Shown: positions 11,522-62,801, counted from the first letter of the stretch. The stretch: 64,000 nt of DNA from Bugula neritina (GCA_964035545.1 OZ037769.1:868001-932000), one strand, 5' to 3'. Numbers and translations are program-made. Notes: a model not told the origin generated them from the letters alone.

Positions 11522-11716
11522 TGTTGATGATATGCTGAATAAGCTTTGTTTTTGTTTGTAAAGGTTTATACTTTATACTATGTTATTCGTGTTATTAATA
11601 ATAGTCAGTTTGTGCTTTTAGATCTATCCAGAGTGGACCTTTAATATCTTGAGCAATAAACTATCTTAAACTCTTTGACCGGTCTCTGAATCTATAAAGC
11701 AAACATAGCATAAACA
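11522..11716 (+). repeat. 3' LTR
   Basis: Identical by eye to 7028-7222; preceded by the PPT and followed by TSD ACTAC. Confidence 0.95.
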
Positions 11717-28116: not shown

Positions 28117-28938
28117 TGTGATTCAGAATTTGATTGTTTCTTTATCGATAAGCGGCGATTCAGCTTGAGCTTCCAAGTTCAACTTCAAGAGATCCAGTTT
28201 CAGTTTGAGTTTCGACTTTTATTTTTACTCTAGTTCTAGAGTCAGAGTGCAAAATTAAAATCAAAATGAGAAAAATAAGCTGATAGTTATACTCTGAGCT
28301 AAAACAAATAAGCTGTGTATAAAGTTGTTCACTACTATCTCTAAAAATGAAAACCGAAAACGTTTAGACTAGAAAGCAATCATAATAATGTCATTGTCAC
28401 AATCACAATATCAATATTCTCAGTTCCAGAAACAATTTGAATCAGCAATAACTTTAGCCACACCACTGCGTTTAATAAAACGAGGTTTTGCGTTAACTTA
28501 TACGCAAGCCGTTCTAGTTGAAGGAATGACAACTCCTTTATATTTGCCAAATAAACTTCCATAATAATAATTATAGAGTTAATAACATTGAACTATGATT
28601 TTAGGTCATTGGTTAACAATGCGGATATTATTTTAATTTGAGAAATAGTCTGAATAGTACTGGAATTAATGAGCTAAGCATATAATGTCAACATTTAGTA
28701 ATGAGAGTTTTAGTATAACCCAAAAATCAGCAATTCAAACTAAACTATAACTTTACAAGATTGAGTTGTGAACACAACTTCACATAGTATTGGAAGAGTG
28801 GTAAAATTAACAAACACCGAATAAAAGCATATGCAACATCGCTCAGTTGTAAAAAGTAGCAAAATCAAAAGTCAAATCTTTATGAGCAAGCAATTATACT
28901 GGTATAATACTGTTTTTACTGTAATATGTATAATATAG

Positions 28939-31900
28939 TCAGATGACTGGTGATGTCATATCCTGTCTGTTCTCATAAAGAGGAACTGTTGTGTTCAGTT
29001 GAAGTTGTTCATATGCTGATGATGGAGAGGTGGTGAGCTGCTCGTAAGTGTTGGTGGGAGGATTTGCTGAGTTTGAGGGTCGAGTAGACACAGGTTCTTC
29101 ATATACTTCATGTTTATCAGATGGGGTGTCTCTACAGGGCAGACTACTTCTTTTCAAGTAGAGAATAATACTACCCAGTGTAACCACTGCTAGTACCAGA
29201 ACTACCACCACTCCAATCAAACCATCTAAACACACAAATAATTTACAGTTGATAATTGCAGGTCAAAATTAGCAAAGAAATTATGCTTAGACAAGGCAAT
29301 ATGTATAAATAAATTTGTGCGACCAAAAATGTTCAGAGTAGAACATATCTACTTGACAGATTATAAAGTTTTACAAGACAAATCAATTGTATAGATTTAC
29401 CATTGTATAGTAATGCTGTCAGAGAACTGAAAATTAAGTTGTTCATTGCTGAGCATTACTTGGGTTTAGGTAACTTATCAGTTGTAGTCAATTGCAATAT
29501 TTCGTCAATACAATCACATCTCATATATACAAGCTCACCAATATAATATTTATAAATTTGTTTATAAAGACCGTTATGGTTTGTCACAAACTACTTCCAT
29601 CCGCAATGTATTATTGTACACCTGTGCGGAAATGCAAACTATATAAAACTGTTTTAATTCAGCTCGCTAGAAGTTAAAATAAAAAAACGTGCTCGCTAAA
29701 TATTACATGGTAATAAGCCAATTAGATCAAACACACACGAGCGTGTCGCACTTCTCACTCAGCATGTTAGACACTTGAAAATCCGCACGCAACGTCCAAT
29801 TTTTGAGCTAAATAGCTTTTCTCGCACGTCACGCTCGAGCAAAACGCGTCGTGTGGCCCTACAGTAACAATAGTTTACCAGTGTCACTTACCTCTTTGTG
29901 ACTGAACAGGGAAATGGCTGTTTCCTGAAACTGCAGAAACTTTACCATCTTTGACCAACAAACAACCAGGGTCATGTGACCAGTTACCAGATTCTGTACA
30001 GACATGATCTGTAGTCTTAGTATAACCAATATCACATGAGTAGAGTAGATTATCTCCTCTGTAATATCTGTCTGTCTGTATGTCTCCGTTAGTTAGATTT
30101 AGTGCTGTAGGGTCACACTCAACTGTAAGAATAACCACGGCCACATATATGTATTGTATATACTCCTCAAAGCTGTATTACCATACAACTACAGTTTGAT
30201 GGATGTATATTATTGAAATTAGTCTAAATAATCTTACCAGTTTCAGAACATTCTGGAACACTGGACCAACTACCATCATACTGACATTGGATAACACTCG
30301 GATTTGTTTTCTTGTAACCATAGTAACAATTATACTGTAGAACTTCTTGGTAGAAATATGTGTGAGTTATCCCCCCTTTAGATGTCACATAAGTAGTTGT
30401 TGTGTTGAGAAACAAATCACTAATCTCACATTCCACTGAATAAAAAACAGCAAAGTTTTTTTGCATAATTGCATTGAGACATTATGCTATATTCATGATA
30501 TATTATAGCACAACTATATAGTATAGATATATACCTATTGTACATGTTGAAGATATATTACTCCATATCCATGGTATAATATTACTATATACATATACCT
30601 GGTGTACATGTTAGAGATATATTACTCCATATCCATGGTATATTATCTGTATCAGTAGAACTACATCTAGATACAACTTCTTCTATTCCATTTCTACTTT
30701 CATATCCTTTTATACACTCATATACTGTTGTATGAGTATCAGTCTTAGTTTTAGTAGTAAACTCAACATCTCTCGGCTCTTCTGTACAGTAGGGGACTAA
30801 AAAAGATATTTAAAAGTACTAGTTTGAATTATTAGAATACAATTAGAAGTATTATACTCAGGTATTAGATGAAGTCTATATAATATAATACTTATCATGC
30901 AAGCTTGTGCTATAAATATATACCTGGAATACATTTGATCTCTGATTGGTTGACCCACTTAGCCTCTGTACCATCTACATTACATTCAGAAGTTGAGTTA
31001 TACTTCAACTGATAGTCAGTATCTTCACAAGAATAGTTTATTATCGTACCAGGAAACCAGGGAGATTTAGTAGATGGAGTACTTGTCACATGATCTATTT
31101 CAGGTTTATCTCCACATGTCAGTACTGTGAAACATACAAAATAACATGCAGCAAGATAAACTATAATTAGTCTTATATAATATGTTTTAAAAAGAAAATT
31201 TCTCATTGGTTTGATCAGCCTAATTTCTTGCTCTGATTCTTTGCTTCTCTCACTCACCTGTAAACTGGATCATAAAGAATACTCCCTCTACATCTCCAGA
31301 TACAGGATCTGGTTCTTGTTCATATCTCACAGATAGTTGATTGTTTGTAGAGTTTATGTTATGTAGATATCCATCAGGGAAGTTAGCAAACTCCTGATTA
31401 TCAATAAACCAGAAGTCCTCTTCGAAATCATCTGTCACAATAATAAAATCAAACCTAACATAGTGAGCTGCACTTGGTAGGTTTGATATTGTAAACTCAC
31501 AGGATGGTAATGGCTGTTTATTAATTGTATAAGAGCTGGTGAATATTCCAGTCAACTGTTCAACTTGAAGTCTGTCTGGTATCTGAATATCTTCACCACA
31601 TGATGTCACTGTAACAGAAATTATGCATCCATTTTCTAATTGCTCAATTTGGTAATGCTGTATATATTAGCATAAAACATTAATTTCTTGCACAGGTTAG
31701 CTTTACCTGTAGTATGTACCTGTTGAGAAGAACTCCAAATTGAATCCTGTCATGTTGCTGAGAGTAGAAACTGATAATACAGACGGTTCTTGAGTGAACT
31801 TCTGTATTATACCTTCAGGTCTTGTAGAGTCAATACAGTATGTTGTACCATCTATTTGTATTTCTGTGCAAAAGTATCCTTCAAAATATTTATACCCAAC

Positions 31901-32266
31901 TCCTGGTATACTGATATAACTACCAGCAGGTGTTCTCAGAGTTAGACTACATCTAACAGGTGCCCCCTCTATCTCTCTATGTTCTATTATCCCTGCATAT
32001 CCTCTATCAACTGTCACTGTGTTATTATCACATATATTCACTGGTTTAATATCTTGCCCTTTTATCAATATGATGATATAACCACTCAGTAGCAGCAGGA
32101 GTTGTCTTCTGACTGACTGAAACAAGAACGTTTAATATTAGTGTATATACACTTCTACATTTTGTACAGAAAAACTCAACCAAACTCTATGCATGACTAA
32201 CCCTTTTGCACTGCTGATCCTACTAACTAATATCGGCATACTGTACATACACTGTGTACTTACCAT
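28939..32266 (-). CDS. Receptor paralogue 1: SP - CUB-like x2 - CCP x4 - TM - ITAM-type tail (class A), ~621 aa
   Basis: Exons 32264-32266 (ATG|GTAAGT), 31720-32116, 31258-31608, 30924-31124, 30599-30796, 30238-30435, 29892-30122, 28939-29225 join in frame. Signal peptide MSVRRQLLLLLSGYIIILIKG; CCP pattern C..Y.C..GY....C...G.WS..P.C; TM GLIGVVVVLVLAVVTLGSIILYL; tail YEQL-x7-YEQL. Confidence 0.85.
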
Positions 32267-33969: not shown

Positions 33970-36900
33970 TTATGCCACCTTAGTTGATGGCAAATTGCTG
34001 ATGCCCACACCTACGAACTCGTAAGTGTTGGTGTTGTTGAGAGAATTTGCTGAGTTTGATGGTCGAGTAGACACAGGTTCTTCATATACTTCATGTTTAT
34101 CAGATGGGGTGTCTCTACAGGGCAGACTACTTCTTTTCAAGTAGAGAATAATACTACCCAGTGTAACCACTGCTAGTACCAGAACTACCACCACTCCAAT
34201 CAAACCATCTAAAACATGTCATGTGATTTATAAAATGTAACACAAAATAGCAAAAGTGAAAGTTTGACAGAGCTCAAAAGAATAGCACAGAGAATGTATA
34301 AATAAAATTTATAAATAAAGTGCGGCTTAATTAGTCGTTATTGAATAAAACAAAGTTATTGCTGGTAACAATGTTTGGATTTTAAAAGTGAGTCAGTTTA
34401 ATTAACCCAGAATAACATCTTTGTTTTAGTTACAATGGTCTCAATTAATTTTCCCTGAATCTGAATATTGTTTATTGTATTTCTAAAGATTTATTTGCTA
34501 TACCAACTGTAGTGGTGTAATAATAGTGCGCCTGCTGTAACCCAGAGTTCTCGGGTTCGAATCCCAGTGGGGGTAAAAGTTTTATGCTATCTCATTGGTT
34601 TGTCAGATTATCTTCTGGCTCCAAGAGTTGGTGAAACTAATTTAATGTGTCTACTAGCTGCTCATTGTATTAATTAGAAATTTAATTTTTACCTTCAACA
34701 ATCAATTTAACAGCATCAAATACCTCTTTGTGACTGAAGGTAGAGCTTGCTCTGCTCTAAGACTTTAAGACGTTTACCATCTTCAACCAACAAACAATCA
34801 GGGTCATGTGACCAGTTACCAGACTCTGTACAGACAGGATCTGTAGTCTTAGTATAACCATCATCGCATGAGTAGAGTAGATTATCTCCTCCGTAATATC
34901 TGCCTGTCTGTAAGTCTCCGTTACTTAGAATCAGTATTGTAGGGTCACATTCAACTATCGAAATAATGGAAAGCACTACTATACTTTAAGTTACTCAGCA
35001 ATCATAGTTTTGCAGTTTTTAAAAATTTGATTAAAAATACGCTGCTTATTAAAATATTAGTAACTATTCGTAACAATCGTATAGTATTGTATCAGATAAT
35101 AATGCGATTTGTGTGCAAAGGGGAGGTTATATACTTGCTTACAATAATATTATAATTTAGTATATAAAATTAAAATATACAGTTTTAGCTTATATACAGG
35201 AGTACATATATCAATTATGAACACATAATTGTTTGCAGTATATTATTACTATATATATACATATACCTGGTGTACATGTTAGAGATATATTACTCCATAT
35301 CCATGGTATATTATCTGTATCAGTAGAACTACATCTAGATACAACTTCTTCTAGTCCATCTCTACTCTCATATCCTTCTATACACTCATATACTGTTGAA
35401 TGAGTATCAGTCTTAATTTTATTAGTAAACTCAACATTTCTTGGCTCTTCTGTACAGTAGGGGACTAGAAAATACAATTATAAGTATTATATTCAGATAT
35501 TAGAGAAAGTCTATATATAATCCTAATTATACAGCCTTGTGTTATGAAAACATACCTGGAATACATCTGATCTCTGATTGGTTGATCCACTTAGCCTCTG
35601 TACCATCTACTTTACATTCAGAAGTTGAGTTATACTTCAACTGATAGTCAGTATCTTCACAAGAGTAGTTTATTATGGTACCAGGAAACGAGGGAGATTC
35701 AGTAGATGGAGTACTTGTCACATGATCTATTTCAGGTTTATCTCCACATGTCAACACTGTAAAAGTACACAGAAGTATGAGCTCATATGCGGCAGACAAT
35801 CTGCATCTTCAAAATCTGAAATAGTTTTAATTGTAGTTTTCGGAATATAATATGTTTTCCATAATGATATTTCGGTAGTGTCTTCACGCAAAACTTATTT
35901 ACTTTGCACTGCTCACTCACCTGTAAACTGAATCATAAAGAATACAGGCTCTACATCTCCAGTAGTAGGATCTCCCTCATTTTCATATCTCACAGAGAGT
36001 TGGTTGTTTGTAGAAATTATGTCATGTGGATATCCATCAGGGAAGTTAGCAAACTCCTGATTATCAATAAACCAGGAGATTCTGGATGATTCTTCAAGCT
36101 CAGTAATAATACTAAACTTAACATAGTGAGCCTCACTTGGTAGGTTTGATATTGTAAACTCACAGGATGATAATGACTGTTTATTAGTTGTATAAGAGCT
36201 GGTGAATATTCCAGTCAACTGTTCAACTTGAGGTCTGTCTGGTATCTGAATATCTTCACCACAGGATGTCACTGTAACAAAAATATGTCTACATATATTG
36301 AACATATATACTACCTTTGCCACAAAGTGAAATGGTCTTCACAGCTTGCTAGAAAACCTTTTTCATCAGGGCTCTTCTCACAAGAATAGCAAACATCAAC
36401 CCTCCTGTTATATACCAATGGACTTTATAAAGTGTTCCTAATAATATCTTACTAATTTGGTGTAACACATGTCTGATATCAAATATACTCGCTATGGTAT
36501 GATATATCCTACAACCTACAACCTAGATGCGTTATTTCTTAATGTTGATTAATCTATGTCCACCAGTCAATAGATAATTGATATTTCTTATATTCCAAAT
36601 GCCAATAAGGTCTGCTGAATATACTGTAAATATATATTGTGTTTAGGTAAGTTGAAGACATAACAAAAGTCAAAACTGAGGGCGACACTAGCTGAGACAG
36701 CAGAATTGGCCATCTGCAAACTGGCAAAATTTCATTGCTACTTCAAAAACTACTGTTTTTCAGTTTCCCTTTAAATATCTTCGTTATGTAAAATTAAAGT
36801 TAAAACTTTGCAATAAAAACATGAAATGCAGTTACGCTGCTAAATAACAGCACTTTTTAATGGTTAGGTGTTCCGCCATTTTGTCACATATACTATAACG

Positions 36901-37310
36901 TACTCGTATGCTCTCACTATACACAGCAGTGATTTACTAGTGCTGTTGGGTTGAAAGTCGGCTGCATTTTTAAAACTATAGATAAATAAGTTTGAGTTGC
37001 TGTTCACTGCTACAAATTATCTTCCAATATTCTTACACTGCCTGGAGGGTGGTGGGGGTTATTAAATGGCTGGTATCACCATTGTATAATATAGTAATTT
37101 GACACATTGAAACACTAATTTAATCATTGTCATATTATTCTACTGCAAGAGGTCAGTACATTGTTCTTATAGAGTTATATAATATATAGAGAGGTGAATG
37201 GAATGAGGCTTTAATAAACCAGCCTTGAATGTTTGAATACAAGATTAACATATAGCGAAAAATATTTTATGAAAACTACATTCTTTCCTAACATATTCAT
37301 CTAGCTATAT

Positions 37311-37381
<71 letters not shown>

Positions 37382-38095
37382 CATGTCACTCAATTTACAA
37401 AATACAAAACTTTTTGCACTTTTGCACCAAAATTTTGCTCATTCAATTAATTTTCCGCTAACTATTATAACGAAAAACTTCATAGTATTTGCATTTCCTT
37501 CAGACAACAAAACTAGCCAAAGATACATAAATATATATTAATATTTACCTGTTGAGAAGAACTCCAGGTTAAATCCTGTCATGTTGCTGAAAGTAGAAAC
37601 TGATAATACAGACTGTTCTTGGGTGAACTTCTGTATTATACCAGGTTCTGTAAAGTCAATACAGTATGTTCTACCATCTATCTGTATTTCTGGACAAATA
37701 GCACCTTCAGCAGCTACCTCAACTCCTGGTATACTGATATAACTACTTATAGCAGGTGCTCTCAGAGTTAGACTACATCTAACAGGTGCTCCCTCTATCT
37801 CTCTATGTTCTATTATCCCTGCATATCCTCTATCAACTGTCACTGTATTATTATCACACATATTCACGGGTTTAATATCTTGTCCTTTTATCAATATAAC
37901 GATGTAACCACTCAGTAGCAGCAGGAGTTGTCTTCCGACTGACTGAAACAAAAACGTTTAATATTAGTATATATATACACTTCTACATTTTGTCCCGAAA
38001 AACTGAATCAAATACTATAATGTATGATTCCCTTATGCACTGTTGATCTTACTAACTAATATCAATATAATGTACATACACTGTGTACTTACCAT
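33970..38095 (-). CDS. Receptor paralogue 2: SP - CUB-like x2 - CCP x3 - TM - short tail (class B), ~538 aa
   Basis: Exons 38093-38095, 37549-37942, 35921-36271, 35556-35756, 35267-35464, 34724-34954, 33970-34208. Lacks the third CCP exon; tail VYEEP...TYEFV...STKVA. Confidence 0.82.
34507..34640 (+). mobile_element. tRNA-derived SINE-like element in the last intron of paralogue 2
   Basis: A-box-like TGGTGTAATAA, B-box GGTTCGAATCC and tRNA-like loop CTGTAAC, followed by a non-tRNA body; second copy at 49711. Confidence 0.6.
37315..37380. repeat. (TA)n microsatellite
   Basis: About 33 TA units; absent at the equivalent site of paralogue 5 (~52395). Confidence 0.9.
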
Positions 38096-39472: not shown

Positions 39473-42400
39473 TTAAATATTTTCATAAGCTGATGATTCT
39501 AGCTGCAGCTTTTCATATGTTGGTGCAGGAGCTCCGTTGTTTTGTAACTTTTCATAAAGAGAACTTTCATTGTTTACAGGGTTGCCATTGGTTACTGATG
39601 TAGACGTGTCCATTTCCTCATAGTTGTGAGTAGCTGAGTTCACTCTGGGAGAGAGTTGAGTAGACATGGGTTCCTCGTACACATCAGGGTCAAAAAGTGG
39701 GTGGGTTGTACAGGGCAAACTATCTCTTTTCAAGTAGAGTATTATAATACTGATTGTAATCACAGCTACAGGTACTGCTATGGTCAGAGCAATGAGACCT
39801 CCTGGAAAGAAGTTAATGTTAAGTCTACATAAACATGTGCAAATTCAACAAATTTATATTCTGTAGACAGCTACTGAACTCTAGTGAGAGGGTATGTAAT
39901 ATATTCTGTAAACAGCCACTGAACTCTAGTGAGAGAGTATATAATATATTCTGTAGACAGCCACTGAACTCTAGTGAGAGAGTATATAATAGATAAAATA
40001 GAAGAAACAAGAACTTACCACTGAGTGGCACAATCTTTTCATCTATGGTAGTAGAACGAGTCATATCCTCAGATACAACACAACCAGGGTCATGTGACCA
40101 GTTACCAGACTGTGTACAGACAGGATCTGTAGTCTTAGTATAACCATCATCACATAAGTAGAGTAGATCATCTCCTCCGTAATATCTGTCTGTCTGTTTG
40201 TCTCCGTTAGTTAGGGTTAGTGCTGCTGGGTCACACTCAGCTGTTAGGAAATAACAGAGTCTGTTGAAATAATTTTACATATGAAAACATAACAAGCTAT
40301 ATTATAGGAATATTCTATTATATTTGAACCTATATATAATTACCTGTCTCTGTACATTCTGGAACACTGGACCAAGTTTTATCATGTTGACACTGTATCA
40401 CGTCCATGTTTGTTTTCTTATAACCATAGTAACAGACATATGATAGAACTTCTTGGTAGAGATATGTTTGAGTTGTCCCTCCCTTAGATGTGATGTTAGT
40501 AGTGGAATTATTGATCGAGAGATCAGTGATGTCACACTCAACTAAAGTTATTATTAAAAAACAAACTTGCGGAGGACAAGGAACATATATACGTAGTGTA
40601 AAATAAAAAATTATTATTGAAAAACAAACTTTAAATTGGCAATGAAATTTTTCGCAAAGTAATTTAAGTTGTCATTACTAATTTAGTATATTAAATTTAA
40701 ATTATGTAGTTTTGGCTATAAAGATAGTATGTAATATATATACAATATCTACACTCTACAGTGCATTATTACTATATACATATACCTGGTGTACATGTTA
40801 AAGATATATTAATCCATACCCATGGTATATTATTACTATATACATATACCTGGTGTACATGTTAGAGATATATTACTCCATATCCATGGGATATTATCTG
40901 TATCAGTAGAATTACATCTAGATACAACTTCTTCTATTCCATCTCTACTCTCATATCCTTTTATACACTCATATACTGTTGTATGAGTATCAGTCTTTGT
41001 TTTAGTAGTAAACTCAACATCTCTTGGTTCTTCTGTACAGTAGAGGACTACAGAAACAGCATTTGGAAGTATTATATTTAGTTATTAGAAAAATTCTATA
41101 TTATCCTCATTATACAGGTTTATGTTATGAATACATACCTGGAATACATCTGATCTCTGATTGGTTGACCCACTTAGCCTCTGTACCATCTACTTTACAT
41201 TCAGAAGTTGAGTTATACATCAACTGATGGTCAGTATCTTCACAAGAGTAGTTTATTATTGTACCAGGAAACCAGGGAGATTCAGTAGATGGAGTACTTG
41301 TCACATGATCTATTTCAGGTTTATCTCCGCATGTTAACACTGTGTAAAAGTAAAGAGAAAGTTGGCTCGCATATGGCAGACACAGGGAGAAAGTCCAAGA
41401 TATTTCTGAAAAAAGTTTCAGTTGTAATTTTCAGAATCTAATTTTGGCTGTGACGGCTTTATAATATTTTGATGCTTAAAAACTCATTTATGTGCGTTTT
41501 TCACTCACCTGTAAACTGAATCATAAAGAATACTGATTCTACATCTCCAGATACAGGATCTCCCTCATTTTCATATCTCACAGAGAGTTGGTTGTTTGTA
41601 GAGATTATGTCATGTAGATATCCATCAGGGAAGTTAGCAAACTCCTGATTGTCAATAAACCAAGAGGTTCTGGATGATTCCGTAAGCTCAGTAATATCAA
41701 ACCTAACATAGTGAGCTTCACTTGGTAGGTTAGATATTGTAAACTCACAGGATGATAATGACTGTTTCTTAGTTGTATAAGAGCTGATGAATATTCCAGT
41801 CAACTGTTCAACTTGAGGTCTGTCTGGTATCTGAAGATTTTCACCACAGGATGTTACTGTAAAAGAAATATACCTAGCAAAATTTACTTTAATGCTTATT
41901 ATATTTTTAAAGATATTTGCTCTACAGTGTTGAGTGAACCTTATTAAATGGGTTGCTTCTCAATGAACACTGTATAACTGATAACTAACAACACAATAGC
42001 ATATCACAACTACAGGCAAGTTAATCATTCAAACTATTTGTTAGCTAATAGATATTAGTTTTCTGTACTTTGAAAAGATTTACAAGTTTTTTACATTAGA
42101 ATTACTTATATAAATTCAAAGTGCATCCCTTTACCTGTTGTAAAGAACTCCAAGTTGAATCCTGTCATGTTGCTGAGAGTAGAAACTGATAATACAGACT
42201 GTTCTTGAGTGAACTTCTGTATTATACCAGGTTCTGTAGAGTCAATACAGTATCTTCTACCACCTATCTGTATTTCTGGACAGATATCACCTTCTTCAGC
42301 TACAAAAACTTCTGTAATGCTGATATAACTACCAGCAGGTGCTCTCAGAGTTAGACTACATCTAACAGGTGCTCCCTCTATCTCTCTATGTTCTATTATC

Positions 42401-42621
42401 CCTGCATATCCTCTATCAACTGTCACTGTATTATTATCACATATATTCACTGGTTTAATATCTTGTCCTTCTATTAATATGGCTGTGTTATAGATACTCA
42501 ACAGTAGGAGTTGCAGAGGGAAGAACTAAAATATAATTAAATTAAATAATGAAAACTGTAGATTGTAAGATTATATACTAGATACTATCCCATGTGTGTG
42601 TAAATAAGTTTTACTCACCAT
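39473..42621 (-). CDS. Receptor paralogue 3: SP - CUB-like x2 - CCP x4 - TM - multi-tyrosine tail (class C), ~629 aa
   Basis: Exons 42619-42621 (ATG|GTGAGT), 42135-42525, 41509-41856, 41139-41339, 40850-41047, 40344-40541, 40019-40240, 39473-39801. TM GLIALTIAVPVAVITISIIILYL; tail YEEP, YEEM, SLYEKL, TYEKL, SAYENI. Confidence 0.85.
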
Positions 42622-44126: not shown

Positions 44127-47100
44127 TCAAATGACTGGTGATGTCATTTCCTGTCTGTTCTCATAAAGAGGAAATGTTGTGTTCAGTTGAAGTTGTTCAT
44201 ATGCTAATGATGGAGAGGTGGTGAGCTGCTCGTAAGTGTTGGTGGGAGGATTTGCTGAGTTTGAGGGTCGAGTAGACATAGGTTCTTCATATACTTCATG
44301 TTTATCAGATGGGGTGTCTCTACAGGGCAGACTACTTCTTTTCAAGAAGAGAATAATACTACCCAGTGTAACCACTGCTAGTACCAGAACTACCACCACT
44401 CCAATCAAACCATCTAAATGAAATTCATATAATTAATAAAATAATAAACAAAATAAAGAAAATTTTTATCTATATAGGTATAAATAAGATAAGTAGAGTG
44501 GAAAACCCTGCTAAAGCTCTAATGCATGAAACAATAAAGAATTTTCTGCAAACAAGTTTAATCGCAGCAAAACCATTATTGTAAAACATAAGGCTTTTTG
44601 GCTGCAGCTTGAAATTCTTGATTTGCTCCAATCATCTGTCAGTTTGAACCCCAGTAGCTGACACTTCCTAACCAGTTGTTTAAGTTACTGAGTACTTTAT
44701 ATATGCATGTATAACTGAATACTAGTCTAATGACAGTTTAACAGCATCACTTACCCCTTTGTGACTGAGGGTATAATCCACTGTTCCCTGTGACATCAGT
44801 AGATTCACCATCTCTGACCAACAAGCAACCAGGGTCATGTGACCAGTTACCAGACTCTGTACAGACAGGATCTGTAGTCTTAGTATAACCATCATCACAT
44901 GAGTAGAGTAGATTATCTCCTCTGTAATATCTGTCTGTCTGTATGTCTCCATTACATTGATTAAGTGCTGCCGGCTCACATTCAACTGTCATAATAGACA
45001 GTAAAATGTATAGAAAATATGAACCAAAATAAATGAAATGATGCCAAACTATTATGTAAAAATTTTTGTTGAGTTTTTCTTTTCATGTATAAAAAAATGA
45101 TAATATACTTTTAAGCTTGTAGCAAACTTGTATTATATGCTAAAAATAAAAATCACAATTAATCACCTGTTTGTGTACATTCTGGAATACTGGGCCAAGT
45201 TTTATCATGTTGACACTGTAACACATCCATGTTTGTTTTCTTGTAACCATAGTAACAGTCATATGATAGAACTTCTTGGTAGACATATGTGTGAGTTATC
45301 CCTCCTTTAGATGTGATCATAGTAGTGGAGTCATTGATGGAGAGATCAGTGATGTCACACTCAACTAAAATTGTTAATAAAAAACAAACTTGCAAATGGC
45401 AATGAGATTTTTACACAAAAAGATTTTATACTTGTTATTATTAAAATTTAGTATGTCAAAAAATAAAATATGCAGTTTCAGTTACAAATATTGTACATAT
45501 ATATGTATTCTTTACAGTACATTTTCACAACTGTGTTATATACCTATTGTACATGTTAGAAATATATTACTCCATATCCATGGTATATTATCTGTATCAG
45601 TAGAACTACATCTAGATACAACTTCTTCTATTCCATCTCTACTCTCATATCCTTTTATACACTCATATACTGTTGTATGAGTATCAGTCTTAGTTTTATT
45701 AGTAAACTCAACATTTCTTGGCTCTTCTGTACAGTAGGGGACTATAAAATACAATTATAAGTATTATGTTAAGTTAATAGAGACATTTTAAATATAATAT
45801 TTCTATTACGTAGCTTTATATTATGAATACATACCTGGAATACATCTGATCTCTGATTGGTTGACCCACTTAGCCTCTGTACCATCTACTTTACATTCAG
45901 AAGTTGAGCTATACTTCAACTGATAGTCAGTATCTTCACAAGAATAGTTTATTATTGTACCAGGAAACCAGGGAGATTCAGTAGATGGAGTACTTGTCAC
46001 ATGATCTATTTCAGGTTTATCTCCGCATGCTAGAACTGCCAAAGAAAACAAAAGTAAGCTCATATGTGGTAGAAACAGGGAGAAAGTCTAAGATATTTCT
46101 GAAAATACTTTTAATTGTAGTTTTCACAATCTAATTTTGGCAGTGAATGCATTATAATATAATATAATAATTATGTTATAAACTCTTATATGTATAAATT
46201 TCTCACTCACCTGTAAACGTAATCATAAAGAATACTGAGTCTACATCTCCAAATAGAGGATCTGGTTTTTGTTCATATCTCACAGAGAGTTGGTTGTTTG
46301 TAGAGGTTATGTCATGTAGATATCCACCAGGGAAGTTAGCAAACTCCTGATTATCAATAAACCAAGAGATTCTGGATGATTCTGTAAACTCAGTAATCAT
46401 ATCAAACCTAACATAGCGAGCTTCACTTGGTAGGTTTGATATTTTAAACTCACAGGATGATAATGACTGTTTATTAGTTGTATAAGAGCTGGTGAATATT
46501 CCAGTCAACTGTTCAACTTGAGGTCTGTCTGGTATCTGAATACCTTCACCACAGGATGTTACTGTAAAACCCCAGCAAATGGCATATTATATATTATTTT
46601 ACACAATACAAATAATTGTTATATTTTGTAGATATTTTTTCACAGCAATATTTTAGTAGAAAGTGAATTGAGAAAAAGCCAGTCTCACAACTCAGCTGAT
46701 CATAGCAAACTTAAGATAACATGTCATAAACACTTACTAAAGTTTAGTGTAGTGTTGAGGGAACCTTATTAAACGGCTTATATACTTTCTAATATACATG
46801 GAGTCTGCTAACAATATATCTTAACTACTTGTTTGCACAGGCAAGCTGCTAAATGCTAACTCAAGATTATTACTAACCTCAATGCAATAAGAATGCTATA
46901 CTCTAGCTACTAGTGTTTGAAATTTTTTTAATATAAAAAGATACATTCATAGATATACAAGAGACATTATGAATTCAGTAATTTCTACCTGTTGTAAAGA
47001 ACTCCAGGTTAAACTCTATCATGTTGCTGAGGTTAGAAACTGATAATACAGACTTTTCTTGAGTGAACTTCTGTATTATACCAGGTCTTGTAGAGTCAAT

Positions 47101-47544
47101 ACAGTATGGTGTACCATCTATCTGTATCCCTTTCTGTATCTCTGGACAGATAGCACCTTCAGCAGCTTCATCAACTCCTGGTATACTGATATAACTACCA
47201 GCAGGTGCTCTCAGAGTTAGACTACATCTAGCAGGTGCTCTCTCTATCTCTCTATGTTCTATTATCCCTGCATATCCTCTATCAACTGTCACTGTATTAT
47301 TATCACATATATTCACTGGTTTAATATCTTGTCCTTTTATCAATATGATAATATAACCACTCAGTAGCAGCAGGAGTTGTCTTCTAACTGACTGAAATAA
47401 GAACGTTTAATATTAGTGTATATATATAAACTCCTACATTTTGCACAGTAAAGCTCAACCAAATTCTATGCATGACTAACCCTTTGCACTGCTGATCCTA
47501 CTAACTAATATCAATATAATGTACATACACTGTGTACTTACCAT
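44127..47544 (-). CDS. Receptor paralogue 4 (class A tail, CCP x4), ~623 aa
   Basis: Exons 47542-47544, 46989-47391, 46211-46561, 45835-46035, 45544-45741, 45167-45364, 44755-44985, 44127-44413, all in frame. Confidence 0.85.
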
Positions 47545-49229: not shown

Positions 49230-52200
49230 TTATGCCACTTTAGTTGATGGCAAATTGCTGATGCCCACACCTACGAACTCGTAAGTGTTGGTGTTGTTGA
49301 GAGAATTTGCTGAGTTTGAGGGTTGAGTATACATAGGTTCTTCATATACTTCATGTTTATCAGATGGGGTGTCTCTACAGGGCAGACTACTTCTTTTCAA
49401 GTAGAGAATAATACTACCCAGTGTAACCACTGCTAGTACCAGAACTACCACCACTCCAATAAAACTATCTAAAACATGTCATGTGTTTTATAAAATGTAA
49501 CACAAAATAGCAAGAGTGAAAGTTTGACAGAGCTCAAAAGAATAGCACAGAGAATTTATAAATAAAATGTGGATAATTAATCGTAATTAAGTAAAACAAA
49601 GTTTATGCTGGTAACAATGTTTGAGTTTTAAAAGCTATAGTTAACACAGAATAACGTCTCTGTTTTAGTTAAAATCATCTCAATCAATTTTCCCTGAATT
49701 TGAATGTGAACTGTGGTGGCGTAATGGTAGTGCGCCTGCTGTAACCCAGAGTTCTCGGGTTCGAATCTCAGTGGGGGTAAAAGTTTTATGCTATCTCATT
49801 GGTTTATCAGATTATCTTCTGGCTCCAAGAGTTGGTGAAACTAATTTAATGTGTCTACTAGCTGATTATTGTATTAGAAATTTAAATTTTGCTTTTAACA
49901 GTCAATTTAACAGCAAAAACATACCTCTTTGTGACTGAAGGTAGATGTTGCTCTGCTCTAAGACTTCAAGACGTTTACAATCTTCAACCAACAAACAACC
50001 AGGGTCATGTGACCAGTTACCAGACTTTGTACAAACAGGATCTGTAGCCTTAGTATAACCAATATCACATGAGTAGAGTAGATTATTTCCTCCGTAATAT
50101 CTGCCTGTCTGTAAGTCTCCGTTACTTAGAATCAGTATTGTAGGGTCACATTCAACTATCGAAATAATGAAAAGCACTACTATACTTTAAGTTACTCAGC
50201 AATCATAGTTTTGCAGTTTTTAAAAACTTGATTAAAAATACGCTGCTTATTAAAATATTAGTAACTATTTTTAACAATGCGATTTGTGTGCAAAGGAGAG
50301 GTTATACTTGCTTACAATAATATTATAATTTAGTATATAAAAATTACAACATACAGTTTTAGCTCATACACAGGAGTACATATATCAATTATGAACACAT
50401 AATTGTTTGCAGTATATTATTACTATATATACATATACCTGGTGTACATGTTAGAGATATATTACTCCATATCCATGTATATTATCTGTATCAGTAGAAC
50501 TACATCTAGATACAACTTCTTCTATTCCATCTCTACTCTCATATCCTTTTATACACTCATATACTGTTATATGAGTATCAGTCTTAGTTTTATCAGTAAA
50601 CTCAACATCTCTTGGCTCCTCTGTACAGTAGGGGACTAGAAAAGTACAATTGGAAGCCTTATATTCAGATATTAAAGAAATTCTATATATAATTCTCATT
50701 ATACAGTTTTATGTCATGGATACATACCTGGAATACATCTGATCTCTGATTGGTTGACCCACTTAGCCTCTGTACCATCTATTTTACATTCAGAAGTTGA
50801 GTTATACTTCAACTGATAGTCAGTATCTTCACAAAAATAGTTTATTATTGTACCAGGAAACCAGGGAGATTCAGTAGATGGAGTACTTGTCACATGATCT
50901 ACTTCAGGTTTATCTCCACATGTCAGTACTGTGAAACATACAAAATAACAAGCAGCAAGATAAACTAAAACTAGTCTAATATTATATGTTTTAAAAAGAA
51001 AATTTCTCATTGGTTTGATCAGTCTAATGGTTATATTTATTGCTCCAATTATAATGTGCATTTTCCACTCACCTGTAAACTGAATCATAAAGAATACAGA
51101 CTCTACATCTCCAGATACAGGATCTCCCTCATTTTCATATCTCACAGAGAGTTGGTTGTTTGTAGAGGTTATGTCATGTAGATATCCATCAGGGAAGTTA
51201 GCAAACTCCTGATTATCAATAAACCAGGAGATTCTGGATGATTCTGTAAGCTCAGTAATAATACTAAACTTAACGTAGTGAGCTTCACTTGGTAGGTTTG
51301 ACATTGTAAACTCACAGGATGATAATGACTGTTTATTAGTTGTATAAGAACTGGTGAATATTCCAGTCAACTGTTCAACTTGAGGTCTGTCTGGTATCTG
51401 AATACCTTCACCACGGGATGTCACTGTAACAGAAATATGTCTACATATATTGAACATATATACTACTTTTGCCACAAAGTGAAATGGTCTTCACAGCTTG
51501 CTAGAAAACCTTTTTCATCAAGGCTCTTCTCACAAGAATGGCAAACATCAACCCTCCTGTTATATACCAAGGACTTTATAGAGTGTTCCTAATAATATCT
51601 TACTAATTTGGTGTAACACATGTTTGATATTTAATATACTGGCTATGGTATGATATATCCTACAACCTAGATGTTATCTCTTAATGTTGATTAATCTATA
51701 TCCACCAGTCAATAGATAATTGATATTTCTTATATTGTAAATGCCAATAAGGTCTGCTGAATATACTGTAAATAAATATATTGTGTTTAGGTAAGTTGAA
51801 TCGACATAACAAAAGTCAAAACTGAGGGCGACACTAGCTGAGACTGCAGAATTGGCCATCTGCAAACTGGCAAAATTTCATTGCTACTTCTAAAACCACT
51901 GTTTTTCAGTTTCCCTTTAAACATCTTCTTTTTGTAAAAACTTTGCAATGAAAACATGAAATGCAGTAACGCTGCTAAATAACAGCACTTTTTAATAGTT
52001 AGGTGTTCTGTCATTTTGTCACATATATATATATATATATAACGTACTCTTATCCTTTAACTATACACAGCAGCGATTTTGTTTTACTGTTACAAATTAT
52101 CTTCCAATATTCTTTTACTGCCTGGAAAGGGGGGAAGGGGGGGGGGTGATTAAAAGGCTGGTATCACCATTGTATATAGTAATTTGACACATTGAAACAC

Positions 52201-53080
52201 TAATTTAATCATTGTCATATTATTCTACTGCAAGAGGTCAGTACATTGTTCTTATAAAGTTATATAATATATAGAGAGGTGAGTGGAATGAGGCTTTAAT
52301 AAACCAGCCTTGAATGTTTGAATACAAGATTAACATATAGCGAAAAATATTTTATGAAAACTACACTTTTTCCTAACATATTCATCTAGCTATATTACAT
52401 ACTCAATTTATGAAATACAAAACTTTTTTGAATTAATTTTCCCAATAACTATTATAACGAAATACTTCAAAGTATTTACATTTCCTTCAGACAACAAAAC
52501 TAGCCAAAGATACATAAACATATATATTAATACTTACCTGTTGTAAAAACCTCCAAGTTAAATCCTGTCACATTGCTGAGAGTAGAAACTGATAACACAG
52601 ACTGTTCTGGAGTGAACTTCTGTATTATACCAGGTTCTGTAAAGTCAATACAGTATGTTGTACTATTTATTTGTATCTCTGGACAGATAGTACCTTCTTC
52701 AGCTGCCTTAACTCCTGGTATACTGATATAACTACCAGCAGGTGCTCTCAGAGTTAGACTACATCTAACAGGTGCTCCCTCTACCTCTCTATGTTCTATT
52801 ATCCCTGCATATCCTCTATCAACTGTCACTGTATTATTATCACATATATTCACTGGTTTAATGTCTTGTCCTTTTATCAATATGATAATATAACCACTCA
52901 GTAGCAGCAGGAGTTGTCTTCTGACTGACTGAAACAAAAACGTTTAATATTAGTGTATAATATACACTTCTTCACTTTGTACAGAAAAACTGAATCAAAT
53001 AATATGCATGGTTCCTTTTATGCACTGCTGATTCTGCTAACTAATATCAATATAATGTACATATACTGTGTACTTACCAT
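49230..53080 (-). pseudogene. Receptor paralogue 5 (class B tail, CCP x3), frameshifted in the second CCP exon
   Basis: Exons 53078-53080, 52538-52928, 51073-51423, 50728-50928, 50439-50635, 49925-50155, 49230-49468. The 50439-50635 exon is 197 nt versus 198 in paralogues, turning NIPWIW into NIHGYGVIYL*. Also Cys to Arg in CUB-like 2 (TSCG to TSRG). Confidence 0.75.
49711..49845 (+). mobile_element. tRNA-derived SINE-like element in the last intron of paralogue 5
   Basis: A-box TGGCGTAATGG, B-box GGTTCGAATCT; same position and sequence as 34507-34640. Confidence 0.6.
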
Positions 53081-54433: not shown

Positions 54434-57400
54434 TTAAATATTTTCATAAGCTGATGATTCTACTTGCAGCTTTTCATATGTTGGTGCAGGAATGCTGTTG
54501 TTTTGTAACTTTTCATAAAGAGAGCTCTCATTGTTTACAGGGTTGCCATTGGTTACTGATGTAGACGTGTCCATTTCCTCATAGTTATGAGTAGCTGAGT
54601 TCACTCTGGGAGAGAGTTGAGTAGACATGGGTTCCTCGTACACATCAGGTACAGAAGATGGGTGGGTTGTACAGGGCAAACTATTTCTTTTCAAGTAGAG
54701 TATTATAATAGTGATTGTAATCACAGCTACAGGTACTGCTATGATCAGAGCAATGAGACCTCCTGGAAAGAAGTTAATGTTAAGTCTATATAAACATGTG
54801 TAATTCTAACAAATTTATATTTGCAGTAGACAGCCACTAAACTCTAGTGAGAGAGTATATAATATATAAAATAGAAAAAACAAGAACTCACCACTTAGTG
54901 GCACAATCTTTTCATCTATGGTAGTAGAATGAGTCATATCCTCAGATACAACACAACCAGGGTCATGTGACCAGTTACCAGACTCTGTACAGACAGGATC
55001 TGCAGTCTTAGTATAACCATCATCACATGAGTAGAGTAGATTATCTCCTCTGTAATATCTGTCTAGTGTGATGGCACCATTAGCTAGGGTTAGTGCTGCT
55101 GGGTCACACTCAGCTGTTAAGAAATGACAAAGTCTGTTGAGGTAATTTTACATATGAAAACATGATAACAAGCTAAATTATAGGAATACTCTATTTTATG
55201 CTGATTATTGAAAGCCAGAAATAATGACCTGTTTGTGTACATTCTGGAATACTGGACCAAGTTTTATCATGTTGACACTGTATCACATTCATGTTTGTTT
55301 TCTTGTAACCATAGTAACAGTCATATGATAAAACTTCTTGGTAGACATATGTGTGAGTTGTCCCTCCTTCAGATGTGATGTTAGTAGTGGAAACATTGAT
55401 GGAGAGATCAGTGATGTCACACTCAACTAAAATAATTATTAAAAAGCAAACTTGCAGATGGCAATGAAATATTCTGCAAAAATATTTTAAGCTGTCATTA
55501 TTATAACTTAGTATGTTAAATTTAAAGTATGTGGTTTTGGCTATAAAGATTATAGTATGTAATATATTTACAATATATCTACACTTTACAGTATATTGTA
55601 AATATATACATATACATGATGTGCATGTTGGAGATATATTACTCCATATCCATGGTATATTATCTGTATCAGTAGAACTACATCTAGATACAACTTCTTC
55701 TATTCCATCTCTACTCTCATATCCTTTTATACACTCATATACTATTGTATGAGTATCAGTCTTAGTTTTAGCAGTAAACTCAACATCTCTTGGCTCTTCT
55801 GTACAGTAGGGGACTATAAAATACAATTATAGGTATTATATTCAGGTATTAGATGAAGTGTATATAATATAATACTTATCATGCAAGCTTCTGCTATAAA
55901 TATATATATACCTGAAATACATCTGATCTCTGATTGGTTGACCCACTTAGCCTTTGTACCATCTACTTTACATTCAGAAGTTGAGTTATACTTCAACTGG
56001 TAGTCAGTATCTTCACAAGAATAGTTTATTATTGTACCAGGAAACCAGGGAGATTCAGTAGATGGAGTACTTGTCACATGATCTATTTCAGGTTTATCTC
56101 CACATGTCAACACTGTAAAAGTACACCAAAGTATGAGCTCATATGCGGCAGACAATCTGCATTTTCAAAATCTGAAATAGTTTTAATTGTAGTTTTCAGA
56201 ATATTATAATGTTTTATCTATAATAATATTTTGGTAGTGATTGCATCATAATATATGTCTTCAAGCAGAACTTTTTTACTTTGTTTTGCTCACTCACCTG
56301 TAAACTGAATCATAAAGAATATTTTATCATTATCTCCAGATACAGGATCTCCCTCATTCTCATATCTCACAGAGAGTTGGTTGTTTGTAGAGGTTATGTT
56401 ATGTAGATATCCATCAGGGAAGTTAGCAAACTCCTGATTATCAATAAACCAGGAGATTCTGGATGATTCTGTAAACTCAGTAATCATATCAAACCTAACA
56501 TAGTGAGCTTCGCTTGGTAGGTTTGATATTGTAAGCTCACAGGATGACAATTCTTGTTTATTAGTTGTATAAGAGCTGGTGAATATTCCAGTCAACTGTT
56601 CAACTTGAGGTCTGTCTGGTATCTGAATATCTTTACTACAGGATGTCACTGTATAACAGACATAGCAAAAGTTTAATTTATTGCGTTATTTCTTTAGATG
56701 TGTTCTGCTGCAAATTGTATCACCTAATAAACTTTTTATTGCATATGAACATTTTATTACAAGGTTGTAAGCCTCTCAATTTTGACAATTACTATACACT
56801 TGTTGAGTGGACGTTACTAAATTATTTATTCTGTAATATACACCGTACACATGATACATAATATAACATTTCTTAACTATAACATGTACTTGTTTGTACA
56901 GACAAGTTAACTATACTTTAAAGGACCTATTGGCTAATGGATTTTATACTTTTAAATCCTGGATATACATTTTCTCCAAGAGAAAAAATTACTTACAAGC
57001 AGAGAAAACTTTGTAAGTTAATTTCACCTGTTGTATTATAATGTTTTTACCTGTTGTAACGAATTCCAAGTTGAACCCTACCATGTTGCTGAGAGTAGAA
57101 ACTGATAATACAGACTGTTCTTGAGTGAACTTCTGTATTATACCAGGTTCTGTAGAGTCAATACAATAGCGTGTACCATCCATTTGTATCTCTGAACAGA
57201 CATCAATATCAGCAGCTACAATAACTCCTGGTATACTGATATAACTACCAGCAGGTGCTCTCAGTGTTAGACTACATCTAACAGGTGCTCCCTGTATCTC
57301 TCTATGGGCTATTATCCCTGCATATCCTCTATCAACTGTCACTGTATTATTATCACATATATTCACTGGTTTAATATCTTGTCCTTCTATCAATATGACT

Positions 57401-57538
57401 GTGTAGATACTCAGCAGTATGAGTTGCAGAGGGAGAAACTAAAATATAATTAAATTAGATACGTAATGAAAACTGTAGATTGTAAGATTATATACTAGAT
57501 ACTATCCCATGTGTGTGTAAATAAGTTTTACTCACCAT
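54434..57538 (-). CDS. Receptor paralogue 6 (class C tail, CCP x4), ~629 aa
   Basis: Exons 57536-57538, 57051-57438, 56298-56648, 55912-56112, 55616-55813, 55229-55426, 54892-55113, 54434-54762 join in frame; two weak donors (CAT|GTATAT, CAG|GTCATT). Confidence 0.82.
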
Positions 57539-59034: not shown

Positions 59035-62000
59035 TCAAATGACTGGTGATGTCATATCCTGTCTGTTCTCATAAAGAGGAAGTGTTGTGTTCAGTTGAAG
59101 TTGATCATATGCTGATGATGGAGAGGTGGTGAGCTGCTCGTAAGTGTTGGTGGGAGGATTTGCTGAGTTTGAGGGTTGAGTAGACATAGGTTCTTCATAT
59201 ACTTCATGTTTATCAGATGGGGTGTCTCTACAGGGCAGACTACTTCTTTTCAAGTAGAGAATAACACTACCCAGTGTAACCACTGCTAGTACCAGAACTA
59301 CCACCACTCCAATCAAACCATCTAAAACATGTCATGTGATTTGTAAAGCAGAATGTAAAATAAAAGAAAGAGCAAATGATTGACAATAAGTAGAGTGGAT
59401 AAACCTATAAAACTCGTGAAACATAAAGCAATAGGAAATATTCTACAAAAATAGTTGAACAAAATATACTCAAATTGATTGGCTCTGACTATCCAAATTC
59501 TGGTAAATCCCTCCACTATTATTGTAAATATTAACATAAGGCTGATCAGCTGAAAGTTAAATGTCTTGACTTGACCCAATCAACTGTCAGCTTCAACTCA
59601 GTTAGTAACTGACAATGTCTATAAACTTTTTCAATCTATATACAACTTTAAACAGCATCACTTACCTCTTTGTGACTGGAGGGCTAGATAGCTGTTTCTG
59701 GTGGCTTCAGCAGATTCACCATCATTGACCAACAGACAACCAGGGTCATGTGACCAGTTACCAAACTCTGTACAGACAGGATCTGTAGTCTTAGTATAAC
59801 CATCATCACATGAGTAAAGTAGATTATCTCCTCTGTAATATCTGCCTGTCTGTATGTCTCCATTAGTTAGAGTTACCAATATTAAGGGGTACACTCAGCT
59901 GTAAGAATAACCACATATATTGTATACTCCTCAAAGCTGTGTTACCATACAACTATACAGTTTGATGAATGTTTATTATAGACATGAGTCTAAATAATCT
60001 TACCAGTCTCAGAACATTCTGGAACACTGGACCAACTACCATCATACTGACATTGGATAACACTCGGATTTGTTTTCTTGTAACCATAGTAACAATTATA
60101 CTGTAGAACTTCTTGGTAGAAATATGTGGGAGTTATCCCCCCTTTAGATGTCACATAAGTAGTTGTTGTGTTGAGAAACAAATCACCAATGTCACATTCC
60201 ACTGAATAAAAAACACAAGAGATTTCTTGTATTAATCATTGAAACATTATCCTATATTCATGGTATATTATTACGCTATATATATTATTACTATATTATA
60301 TAGATATACCTGGTATACATGTTAGAGATATATTACTCCATCTCCATGGTATATTATCTGTATCAGTAGAACTACATCTAGATACAACTTCTTCTAGTCC
60401 ATCTCTACTCTCATATCCTTTTATACACTCATATACTGTTGAATGAGTATCAGTCTTAATTTTATTAGTAAACTCAACATTTCTTGGCTCTTCTGTACAG
60501 TAGGGGACTAGAAAATACAATTATAAGTATTATATTCAGATATTAGAGAAAGTCTATATATAATCCTAATTATACAGCCTTGTGTTATGAAAACATACCT
60601 GGAATACATCTGATCTCTGATTGGTTGATCCACTTAGCGTCTGTACCATCTACTTCACATTCAGAAGTTGAGTTATACTTCAACTGATAGTCAGTATCTT
60701 CACAAGAATAGTTTATTATTGTACCAGGAAACCAGGGAGATTCAGTAGATGGAGTACTTGTCACACAATCTATTTCAGGTTTATCTCTACATGTCAGTAC
60801 TGTAAAAGTAAAGAGAAAAGGTAGCTGGCATATGGCAGACACAGAGAGAAAGTCTAAGACATTTCTGAAAAAACTTTTAATTTTAGTTTTCATAATTTTA
60901 TTTTGGCAGTGAATGTATTATAATGTAATAAAATAATGTTTCGATGCTTTTAAACTCATTTATGTATATTTCTCAATTTTACAGGCATAGAACAAATAGT
61001 AATGACCTCTCTCACTCACCTGTAAACTGAATCATAAAGAATATTTTATCATTATCTCCATTGACAAGATCTCCCTCATTTTCATATCTCACAGAGAGTT
61101 GGTTGTTTGTAGAGGTTATGTTATGTAGATATCCATCAGGGAAGTTAGCAAACTCCTGATTATCAATAAACCAGGAGATTCTGGATGATTCTGTAAGCTC
61201 AGTAATATCAAACCTAACATAGTGAGCTTCACTTGGTAGGTTTAATATTGTAAACTCACAGGATGATAATGGCTGTTTATTAGTTGTATAAGAGCTGGTG
61301 AATATTCCAGTCAACTGTTCAACTTGAGGTCTGTCTGGTATCTGAATATCTTCACCACATGATGTCACTGTAACAGAAACAGTGCAAAAGAATTATTTTG
61401 CGACTTGCTATTTATTGTACCATTTTTATACCATGTTATGGGTTTGAGCCCGGACAAAAGCCATTGGTGACGTTAGGAAAAGCATTCAGCCATAATTGTT
61501 CCTGTTCCTCATTTAAATAAGTCCTTAGCCTGCTTTAACAAAAACCCTTTCTATCCGAAGTTTCTAACAGAGATATAAACTTTCGTGAGTTTGTTTGGTG
61601 AGACATATGTGCATATAAATTTGTTAGCTATAATACCATAGTGATATAATTCTGAATAAAACCTTTGCATTGCAGGTTGTTGAAATTTATTTCTATAATA
61701 CACTTTAGCGAAATCTAGTAAAATACCCAACTTTATGATACATCCAGAACAATTCACTAAATTAAATTATATTCAAACCAAGAGAAAATTTGTTCAAGGC
61801 TTCGTTTACATAAAACAGACAAGGTGAATCAAAAATTGTCAAGAAATTCCAAAATCAGGATTCGCCTATCAAAAACAAAAGATCCAGCATAAATCCAAAA
61901 CAATTAGTTTGTCTGAACTGGATGAAAATAAGCACTTAAAAGCCAGTAACTAGACCTTAATATGGTTCTATTTATAAAGAGCTATAGTCTATGGTCTAGA

Positions 62001-62801
62001 CCCTCCTATTATGAAACAGTCTACCAGTGAAACTTTTTCAATAAATTATATTCTTTTTATGATCATTTCAGTATAATTTGGGTTACCAGATGATAACAAG
62101 CTATATATCTTTTCAAACTCTGCATTATTGTGTTATTTTTACTCTTTGCAAACAGCTGATTTGAAAAGAAAATAACAATGCAGAGTTTGAAAAAATATAC
62201 ATTTATCAGATAATTCAAATATACATGCAGAAGATAAAATGTTCAACTTCTACCTGTTGTAAGGAAATTCAAAGAAAATCCAATCATGTTGCTGAGAGTA
62301 GAAACTGACAATACAGACTGTTCTTGAGTGAACTTCTGTATTATACCAGGTTCTGTAGTGCCAACACAGTATATTGTACCATTTATCTCTATCTCTGGAC
62401 AGGGAGAGCTTCCTGCAGCTGTATCAATATATGGTATACTGATATAACTACCAGCAGGTGCTCTCAGAGTTAGACTACATAAAACAGGTGCTTCCTTTAT
62501 CTCTCTATGTTCTATTATCCATGCATATCCTCTATCAACTGTCACTGTATTATTATCACATATATTCACTGGTTTAATATCTTGTCCTTCTATCAATATT
62601 ATGATGTAACCACTCAGTAGCAGCAGGAGTTGTCTTCTGACTGACTGAAACAAGAACGTTTAATATTAGTGTATATACACTTCTAAATTTTGTACAGAAA
62701 AACTGAATCAAATACTATAATGCATGGTTCCCTTTTGCACTGTTGATCCTGCTAACTGCGAGTAATATCAATATAATGTACATACACTGTGTACTTACCA
62801 T
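59035..62801 (-). pseudogene. Receptor paralogue 7 (class A tail), frameshift at the start of the fourth CCP exon
   Basis: Exons 62799-62801, 62254-62644, 61020-61367, 60599-60799, 60310-60507, 60004-60201, 59666-59898, 59035-59321. The 59666-59898 exon is 233 nt and reads ECTP* (TAA at 59882-59884). The gene is intact if that exon is skipped. Confidence 0.7.

Follow-up and report, generated by a model that had tools for sequence, protein, structure and literature searches.

A clustered family of CUB-like and sushi-domain receptors with a hypervariable membrane-distal loop in the bryozoan Bugula neritina

A 64,000-nt stretch of Bugula neritina DNA (GCA_964035545.1, OZ037769.1:868001-932000; the window) carries seven tandem genes, g1 to g7, of a 22-gene receptor family that lies in two clusters on a single contig (OZ037769.1). 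The encoded proteins comprise a signal peptide, two divergent CUB-fold domains (D1 and D2), two to four sushi domains, a transmembrane helix and a tail with tyrosine motifs. A hypervariable core of about 11 residues (mature positions 52-62) precedes the third cysteine of the membrane-distal domain, D1, and its replacement differences exceed both silent and intron divergence. Diversifying selection on this loop is very probable, though not beyond doubt. Our first choice of function, held with about as much doubt as confidence, is immune-type recognition of non-self: the proteins would be receptors, in a family of cheilostome bryozoans, for a foreign ligand (microbe, parasite or predator).

Gene family, variable loop and predicted fold

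Cluster 1 consists of 11 genes at 897-951 kb of the contig, and g1-g7 are those inside the window. Cluster 2 consists of 11 genes at 588-716 kb, 5 of which are old and divergent. Selection tests used a young set of 17 paralogues that includes the seven window genes. Each gene has an exon 1 reduced to the ATG; exon 2 encodes the signal peptide and D1, and exon 3 encodes D2. Two to four exons of sushi type follow, and the final exon encodes the transmembrane helix and tail. Homology searches and folding were performed exon by exon, and joined gene models served for frames and motifs. Exon 6 matches the sushi/CCP family in Pfam (PF00084, E=2.7e-9), and exons 4, 5 and 7 were assigned to it by Cys/Trp pattern alone.

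Spliced transcripts of the family were detected: runs of RNA type, a class assigned by automatic guess, contain canonical joints at 32116/32264, 30796/30924 and 30435/30599 that are absent from two other runs, and one contig from the read runs skips intron 3. Joints were matched at 90% likeness, and expression is therefore established for the family and not for g1 specifically. Duplication in the assembly or a haplotype artefact was ruled out: copies differ by 10-25% in D1, their introns and tails differ, and related copies occur in independent samples.

All seven loop sequences quoted in an earlier, sequence-only reading of the window were found on the minus strand where it had placed them, one per tandem gene and always in exon 2. 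That reading described about 50 near-identical residues followed by divergence, and the first part holds, with a mean pairwise amino-acid identity of 93.3% among g1-g7 over 50 residues (QDIK..YISI). Divergence is confined to less of the 35-residue stretch than was claimed: identity is 45.6% in the core (PGVG..F, 12 residues) and 59.1% over the whole noted loop up to GIIQ. Conservation resumes at GIIQKFT only in part, with 85.6% identity in the C-flank against 93.3% in the N-flank. Loop indels are in frame, as noted earlier, and g4 has a 4-codon insertion after Cys63. The gene pairs 2/5 and 3/6 differ at 4 of 12 and 7 of 12 core residues, respectively. Their flanking non-coding DNA, reported as near-identical, is 95.4% identical over the 600 nt that precede exon 2. 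In introns 3 and 4 the same pairs diverge by 15-27%, and the description is thus true upstream only. Variable residues are concentrated in a 12-residue window more strongly than in shuffled columns (7 genes, p=1e-4; 17 genes, p=5e-5). Mature position 54 has 11 different residues in 17 genes, with one codon per amino acid and no silent variant, and 13 residues when other samples are included. No two loops are identical among the 17 genes and the proteins of other samples.

The AlphaFold model of D1 (predicted local distance difference test score 89) has a strand order that fits beta3-beta10 of the CUB jelly-roll sandwich (eight strands). The first 17 Foldseek matches are CUB domains (E above 0.001 in every case), and the best VIA-align match is a CUB domain (Z 9.0, root-mean-square deviation 3.0, 101 residues aligned). 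Structural matches of D2 are likewise CUB domains, at lower confidence (Z up to 8.1). Pfam searches returned no CUB (PF00431) match for 18 D1 sequences or for D2, a PDB sequence search returned no match for either domain, and profile comparison of D1 with D2 detected no sequence similarity, though both fold as CUB.

Cys9 and Cys36 are invariant in 32 of 32 D1 sequences; Cys74 is present in 29 of the 32 and Cys63 in at least 18. D2 retains the first cysteine pair only. In CUB domains the second disulfide joins loops L5 and L7, and the odd-numbered loops at one end form the ligand site (PMC8051872). Judged by position, both CUB disulfides (L2-L3 and L5-L7) are probably kept in D1, and Cys63-Cys74 would correspond to L5-L7 and close the variable loop. 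The hypervariable core maps by topology to the end of beta5 and L5, at the odd-loop end of the fold, which binds ligands in other CUB domains. Diversity in D1 is 0.56 at the end of beta5, 0.48 in L5, 0.28 in each of L7 and L9, and 0.45 in the two-residue turn L6. Variability is higher in odd than in even loops, both in D1 (0.29 vs 0.16, p=0.03) and in D2 (0.22 vs 0.05, p=1.5e-4). Given CUB topology, the variable residues probably form one three-dimensional surface. Calcium-binding CUB domains carry conserved acidic ligands on L5 and L9. Here Glu65 is conserved in young genes but not in distant members, L9 has Ser-Asn, and L5 is hypervariable.

Probable selection on the loop and homogenisation of its flank

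Among the 17 young paralogues, the proportions of replacement (pN) and silent (pS) differences in the core loop are 0.36 and 0.20. The ratio of replacement to silent substitution rates (dN/dS) is 2.1 (bootstrap P=0.02), with a range of 1.8-2.1. Introns 3 and 4 diverge by 0.20, which equals loop pS; loop silent sites are therefore at the neutral level, and replacement sites lie about 1.8 times above it. Comparison of codon site models M2a and M1a gave twice the log-likelihood difference (2dlnL) as 48.8 for all of D1 on one tree; the value fell to 18.1 when N-flank, loop and C-flank each had a tree of its own. M8 against M8a agrees (17.5, gap-free columns), and leaving out the six genes that diverge most does not abolish the loop signal (17.3). 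A model that allows double and triple substitutions as well as site-rate variation gives a 2dlnL of 12.6-14.9 (p 0.002-0.0006). Mature positions 54, 57 and 62 recur as selected sites. Both D1 flanks, and sushi exons 4-6 as well, gave no selection signal in the site models. A tree-free minimum-step count found 51 replacement against 10 silent steps (p=0.015).

The sequence-only reading had proposed a ligand-specificity surface under diversifying selection. A surface loop with this dN/dS and significant site models bears out much of that proposal, and the loop may determine ligand specificity. Selection is not limited to the loop, since D2 also holds selected sites on L3, L5 and L9 (2dlnL 28.7; 15.4 with three trees). 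Loop dN/dS lies above 1 and replacement divergence above intron divergence, and by the predicted topology the variable core sits at L5 rather than being scattered or buried.

The N-flank is invariant at the DNA level. Its pS and pN are both 0.04, and its four-fold sites differ by 0.025 compared with 0.20 in introns. The tract spans about nt 40-200 of exon 2 (~150 nt), is carried by 19 genes at 93-100% identity, has sharp edges and stops just before the loop. Old, otherwise saturated paralogues A4 and A5 show no difference from g9 at the 35 silent sites of the tract, whereas 53-77% of silent sites differ in the remainder of the same exon. Nearest-neighbour genes switch from exon to exon.

Protein constraint on the flank, implied by the earlier description of a near-invariant sequence, was rejected. 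Silent sites are as invariant as the protein (pS 0.04 vs about 0.20 in introns), and against the majority sequence there are 11 silent and 39 replacement codon changes over about 30 and 81 sites, a ratio near 1. The flank therefore reflects gene conversion or DNA-level constraint, and the contrast between flank and loop is partly a product of homogenisation. The tract pattern is that of gene conversion or unequal exchange. In another lineage, whose A7 orthologue has a pS of 0.14 and a non-coding difference of 9%, the tract has no fixed silent differences where 2.7-4.0 are expected (P 0.02-0.07), a possible sign that the nucleotide sequence itself is constrained. No local RNA structure was detected in the flank (z=+1.34), and such a structure was discarded as the cause.

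Tails, candidate functions and related systems

Three tail types occur among the window genes and other family members. Type A (YEQL-x7-YEQL) is found in g1, g4, g7, g9, g11 and A11, type B (YEKL-x6-YENI) in g3, g6, g8 and g10, and the short type C, without paired tyrosines, in g2 and g5, both of which also lack exon 6. The spacing of an immunoreceptor tyrosine-based activation motif (ITAM), YxxL/I-x6-9-YxxL/I as defined in PMC9546547, is present in 10 genes (g1, g3, g4, g6-g11 and A11), including 5 of the 7 window genes. Other tail motifs are YxxM, YEN and YEEP sites. The genome contains 46 SH2 matches.

Paralogue A10 (contig 709195-709487) has tail A with Cys in place of the second ITAM tyrosine. 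A1-A3 (contig 588-616 kb) have a fourth tail type, encoded in several exons, with NSLYD/NDLYD motifs that also occur in Watersipora XP_067930168.1. Two signal-peptide/5' types (SVRRQ.. and FFPLQ..) follow the tail of the upstream gene (window 28939-62801 and contig 932-951 kb): the F-type follows tail A, and the S-type follows tail B or C. This linkage suggests that crossovers fall within the homogenised ectodomain exons.

As immune-type receptors, the proteins would present the variable loop (the beta5 end and L5, aided by L7 and L9) at the ligand-binding end of the membrane-distal CUB-like D1. The second CUB-like domain and the two to four sushi domains would serve as a stalk that holds the tip out, and ligand binding would be relayed by the tail tyrosine motifs (YxxL/I-x6-7-YxxL/I plus YxxM, YEN and YEEP). 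Duplication and conversion would shuffle modules while selection keeps the tips different. Tail phosphorylation and signalling are presumed from the motifs, and the ligand would be foreign rather than self.

Several observations count against this account. The codon site models and tests are the author's own implementations, not PAML or HyPhy, and the region for the tree-free count was picked after the data had been seen. The 7 window genes alone gave no significant selection test with three trees (p=0.12). Support for selection is moderate against an extreme-recombination null: with tips reshuffled every 5-10 codons, 3 of 100 neutral simulations reached the loop statistic of 25.6 (p≈0.03). 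The full ITAM consensus includes upstream acidic residues that the ITAM-like tails do not have, and either sign of signalling fits because the second tail tyrosine also matches the pattern of an immunoreceptor tyrosine-based inhibition motif (ITIM).

One alternative is that no selection acts: a change-tolerant loop escapes conversion of its flank, and a dN/dS above 1 arises from recombination, multi-nucleotide changes and alignment error. Homogenisation of the flank at silent sites (pS 0.04; 0/35 for g9 vs A4 or A5), loop silent divergence equal to that of introns, and the inflation of the test statistic that recombination simulations can produce all fit this explanation. It is nevertheless very unlikely, as replacement differences in the loop exceed silent and intron divergence by a factor of about 1.8, and the signal holds under multi-hit and rate models, without gap columns and without the six most divergent genes. 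The tree-free p value and the rarity with which even extreme null simulations reached the observed value argue in the same direction. Alternatively, the family might be an allorecognition (histocompatibility or kin-recognition) locus in which alleles of the D1 loop set the specificity of homophilic or self-ligand binding when colonies or larvae meet, like Alr1/Alr2 in Hydractinia or FF/FcoR in Botryllus. This we consider unlikely. In its favour, Bugula is a colonial sessile animal, bryozoans are named among animals capable of allorecognition (PMC9546547), and the clustering of type I receptors whose tails are ITAM/ITIM-like and of mixed type recalls Alr and FcoR. A syntenic gene in the published assembly, beside an M8 peptidase gene, has a loop that differs from that of A3 (pN 0.39, pS 0.18), and D1 sequences of other samples do not exceed 93% identity to any gene here. 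Those samples belong to a diverged lineage, however (single-copy paralogue orthologues have pS 0.14-0.22), so their loop differences do not demonstrate allelic polymorphism within a population, and the diversity described here is among paralogues of a single haplotype. The family is not known to be linked to fusion or rejection phenotypes, and the B. neritina genome paper mentions only weak Alr1-like hits (PMC7576161). For most genes of the other samples the closest match is the D1 of A10.

The same loop could also serve recognition in reproduction or symbiosis, through sperm capture, the egg or embryo (ovicell) or a bacterial symbiont. The top fold matches include spermadhesins, a group of CUB proteins, and read runs holding the family include symbiont-metagenome libraries. 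Gamete-recognition proteins are known to combine fast evolution with conversion-homogenised repeats. A common fold shows no function, however; ITAM-spaced tails and many diverging paralogues suit immune receptor clusters better, and it is not obvious that a single symbiont, vertically inherited, would select for 17 different loops. A reproductive or symbiotic role is improbable. We give similarly little credence to a bolder proposal, a bryozoan allorecognition or immune receptor complex on the CUB fold, in place of Ig or leucine-rich repeat recognition domains, in which the ~150-nt, lineage-spanning constant exonic segment acts as a homology arm for exchange of the downstream variable half-domain.

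Literature searches, with most subscription journals outside their coverage, found no description of this receptor family. Members of the Hydractinia Alr family (Alr1, Alr2) are, like the genes here, clustered single-pass receptors of a colonial invertebrate with a variable membrane-distal domain; several members have ITAM/ITIM-type tails, and conversion or unequal crossing-over has been suggested as a source of their diversity (PMC9546547). The Alr ectodomain is Ig V/I-set plus Fn3, whereas that of Bugula is CUB-fold plus sushi. For Alr1/2, allelic polymorphism, binding of homophilic type and genetic linkage to fusion are all proven; the Bugula family is known from sequence. Botryllus FF/FcoR genes also form multi-gene clusters with sushi in the ectodomain, tails that swap tyrosine motifs, and intergenic recombination between ectodomain and tail (PMC12582321). 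FcoR is Ig-sushi-Ig-Ig with a motif-less FF partner, while Bugula has one architecture throughout, CUB-CUB-sushi x2-4, and its copies are much younger (80-90% identical in D1). Membership in Alr or FF-FcoR was ruled out; the D1 fold is CUB-like, with no Ig domain among the top structural matches. The likeness to the Alr and FcoR clusters is one of working principle.

CSMD1, SEZ6 and the C. elegans LEV-9/LEV-10 types likewise carry CUB and sushi modules on type I membrane proteins. Genes of these types are conserved and single-copy, with Pfam-detectable CUB domains, whereas the Bugula CUB-like domains escape Pfam and PDB sequence searches, are without a clear calcium-site motif, and are expanded and diversifying. 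The vertebrate paired-receptor clusters KIR/LILR/Ly49 and the clustered protocadherins are birth-and-death clusters in which conversion homogenises modules and selection diversifies binding loops. The cluster dynamics are the same as here but the folds are unrelated, and the likeness is by analogy only.

Among named proteins the nearest match comes from B. neritina. A full profile search found Bugula-like sequences and metagenome fragments that share the cysteine pattern, together with two Watersipora subatra proteins of full length, XP_067929890.1 (E 1e-9) and XP_067930168.1 (E 3e-8). Bugula and Watersipora, both cheilostome bryozoans, are the only named sources. The Watersipora proteins are true homologues with the same layout of D1, D2, sushi, transmembrane helix and tail; they differ in having a D1 that is only distantly similar and other tails, and they are uncharacterised. 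The sushi assignment is also supported by the Watersipora homologue, which matches CD46/CD55/factor H.

Bryozoans reportedly discriminate self from non-self; in the literature searched, no molecule for this discrimination was found, and this family is a concrete candidate. Its defined candidate specificity loop of ~11 residues makes binding and linkage tests straightforward. If the receptor reading is true, the CUB fold would join the scaffolds of diversified recognition repertoires. Separately, the invariance of silent sites in the neighbouring tract raises a testable question about how repertoires are shuffled.

Gene coordinates and other features of the window

Coordinates of the seven genes are given in Table 1. 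In this assembly a 1-nt deletion near 50477 shifts the frame of g5 exon 5; a pseudogene, a secreted short form and an assembly error are the alternatives.

Table 1. Receptor genes and their parts in the window (window positions)
Feature	Position	Strand	Details
g1, whole gene	28939..32266	-	exon 1 (ATG-only) 32264-32266; exon 2 31720-32116; four sushi-type exons; splice joints in text
g1, transmembrane helix and tail	28939-29225	-	tail type A
g1, N-flank of D1	31907..32056	-	mature 1-50; DNA homogenised across 19 paralogues
g1, hypervariable core	31871..31906	-	predicted end of strand beta5 and loop L5; mature 51-62
g1, Cys63-Cys74 hairpin and loop L7	31814..31870	-	moderately variable
g1, exon 3	31258..31608	-	second CUB-like domain D2; odd loops L3/L5/L9 hold a second, weaker set of selected sites
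g2, whole gene	33970..38095	-	exon 2 37549-37942; without exon 6; short tail type C, no ITAM spacing
g2, hypervariable core	37697..37729	-	
g3, whole gene	39473..42621	-	exon 2 42135-42525; tail type B
g3, hypervariable core	42283..42315	-	
g4, whole gene	44127..47544	-	exon 2 46989-47391; 4-codon insertion after Cys63; tail type A
g4, hypervariable core	47149..47181	-	
g5, whole gene	49230..53080	-	exon 2 52538-52928; without exon 6; tail type C
g5, hypervariable core	52686..52718	-	
g6, whole gene	54434..57538	-	exon 2 57051-57438; tail type B
g6, hypervariable core	57199..57231	-	
g7, whole gene	59035..62801	-	exon 2 62254-62644; tail type A
g7, hypervariable core	62402..62434	-	most divergent loop

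Intron 7 of g1 (29544-29860) contains a high-copy repeat with very high contig depth and many loose ends. A LUC7-like splicing factor gene (Pfam PF03194; ~24870-28118, minus strand) begins about 800 nt downstream of the g1 stop, and tandem repeats lie at 24535-24870. A Gypsy-like long terminal repeat (LTR) retrotransposon at 7028-11716 has gag- and pol-like open reading frames, the latter interrupted by a stop near 10380. Its 195-bp LTRs are 100% identical, and its insertion is therefore recent. Simple-sequence repeat arrays at 1100-1670 and 19208-19594 yield spurious open reading frames.

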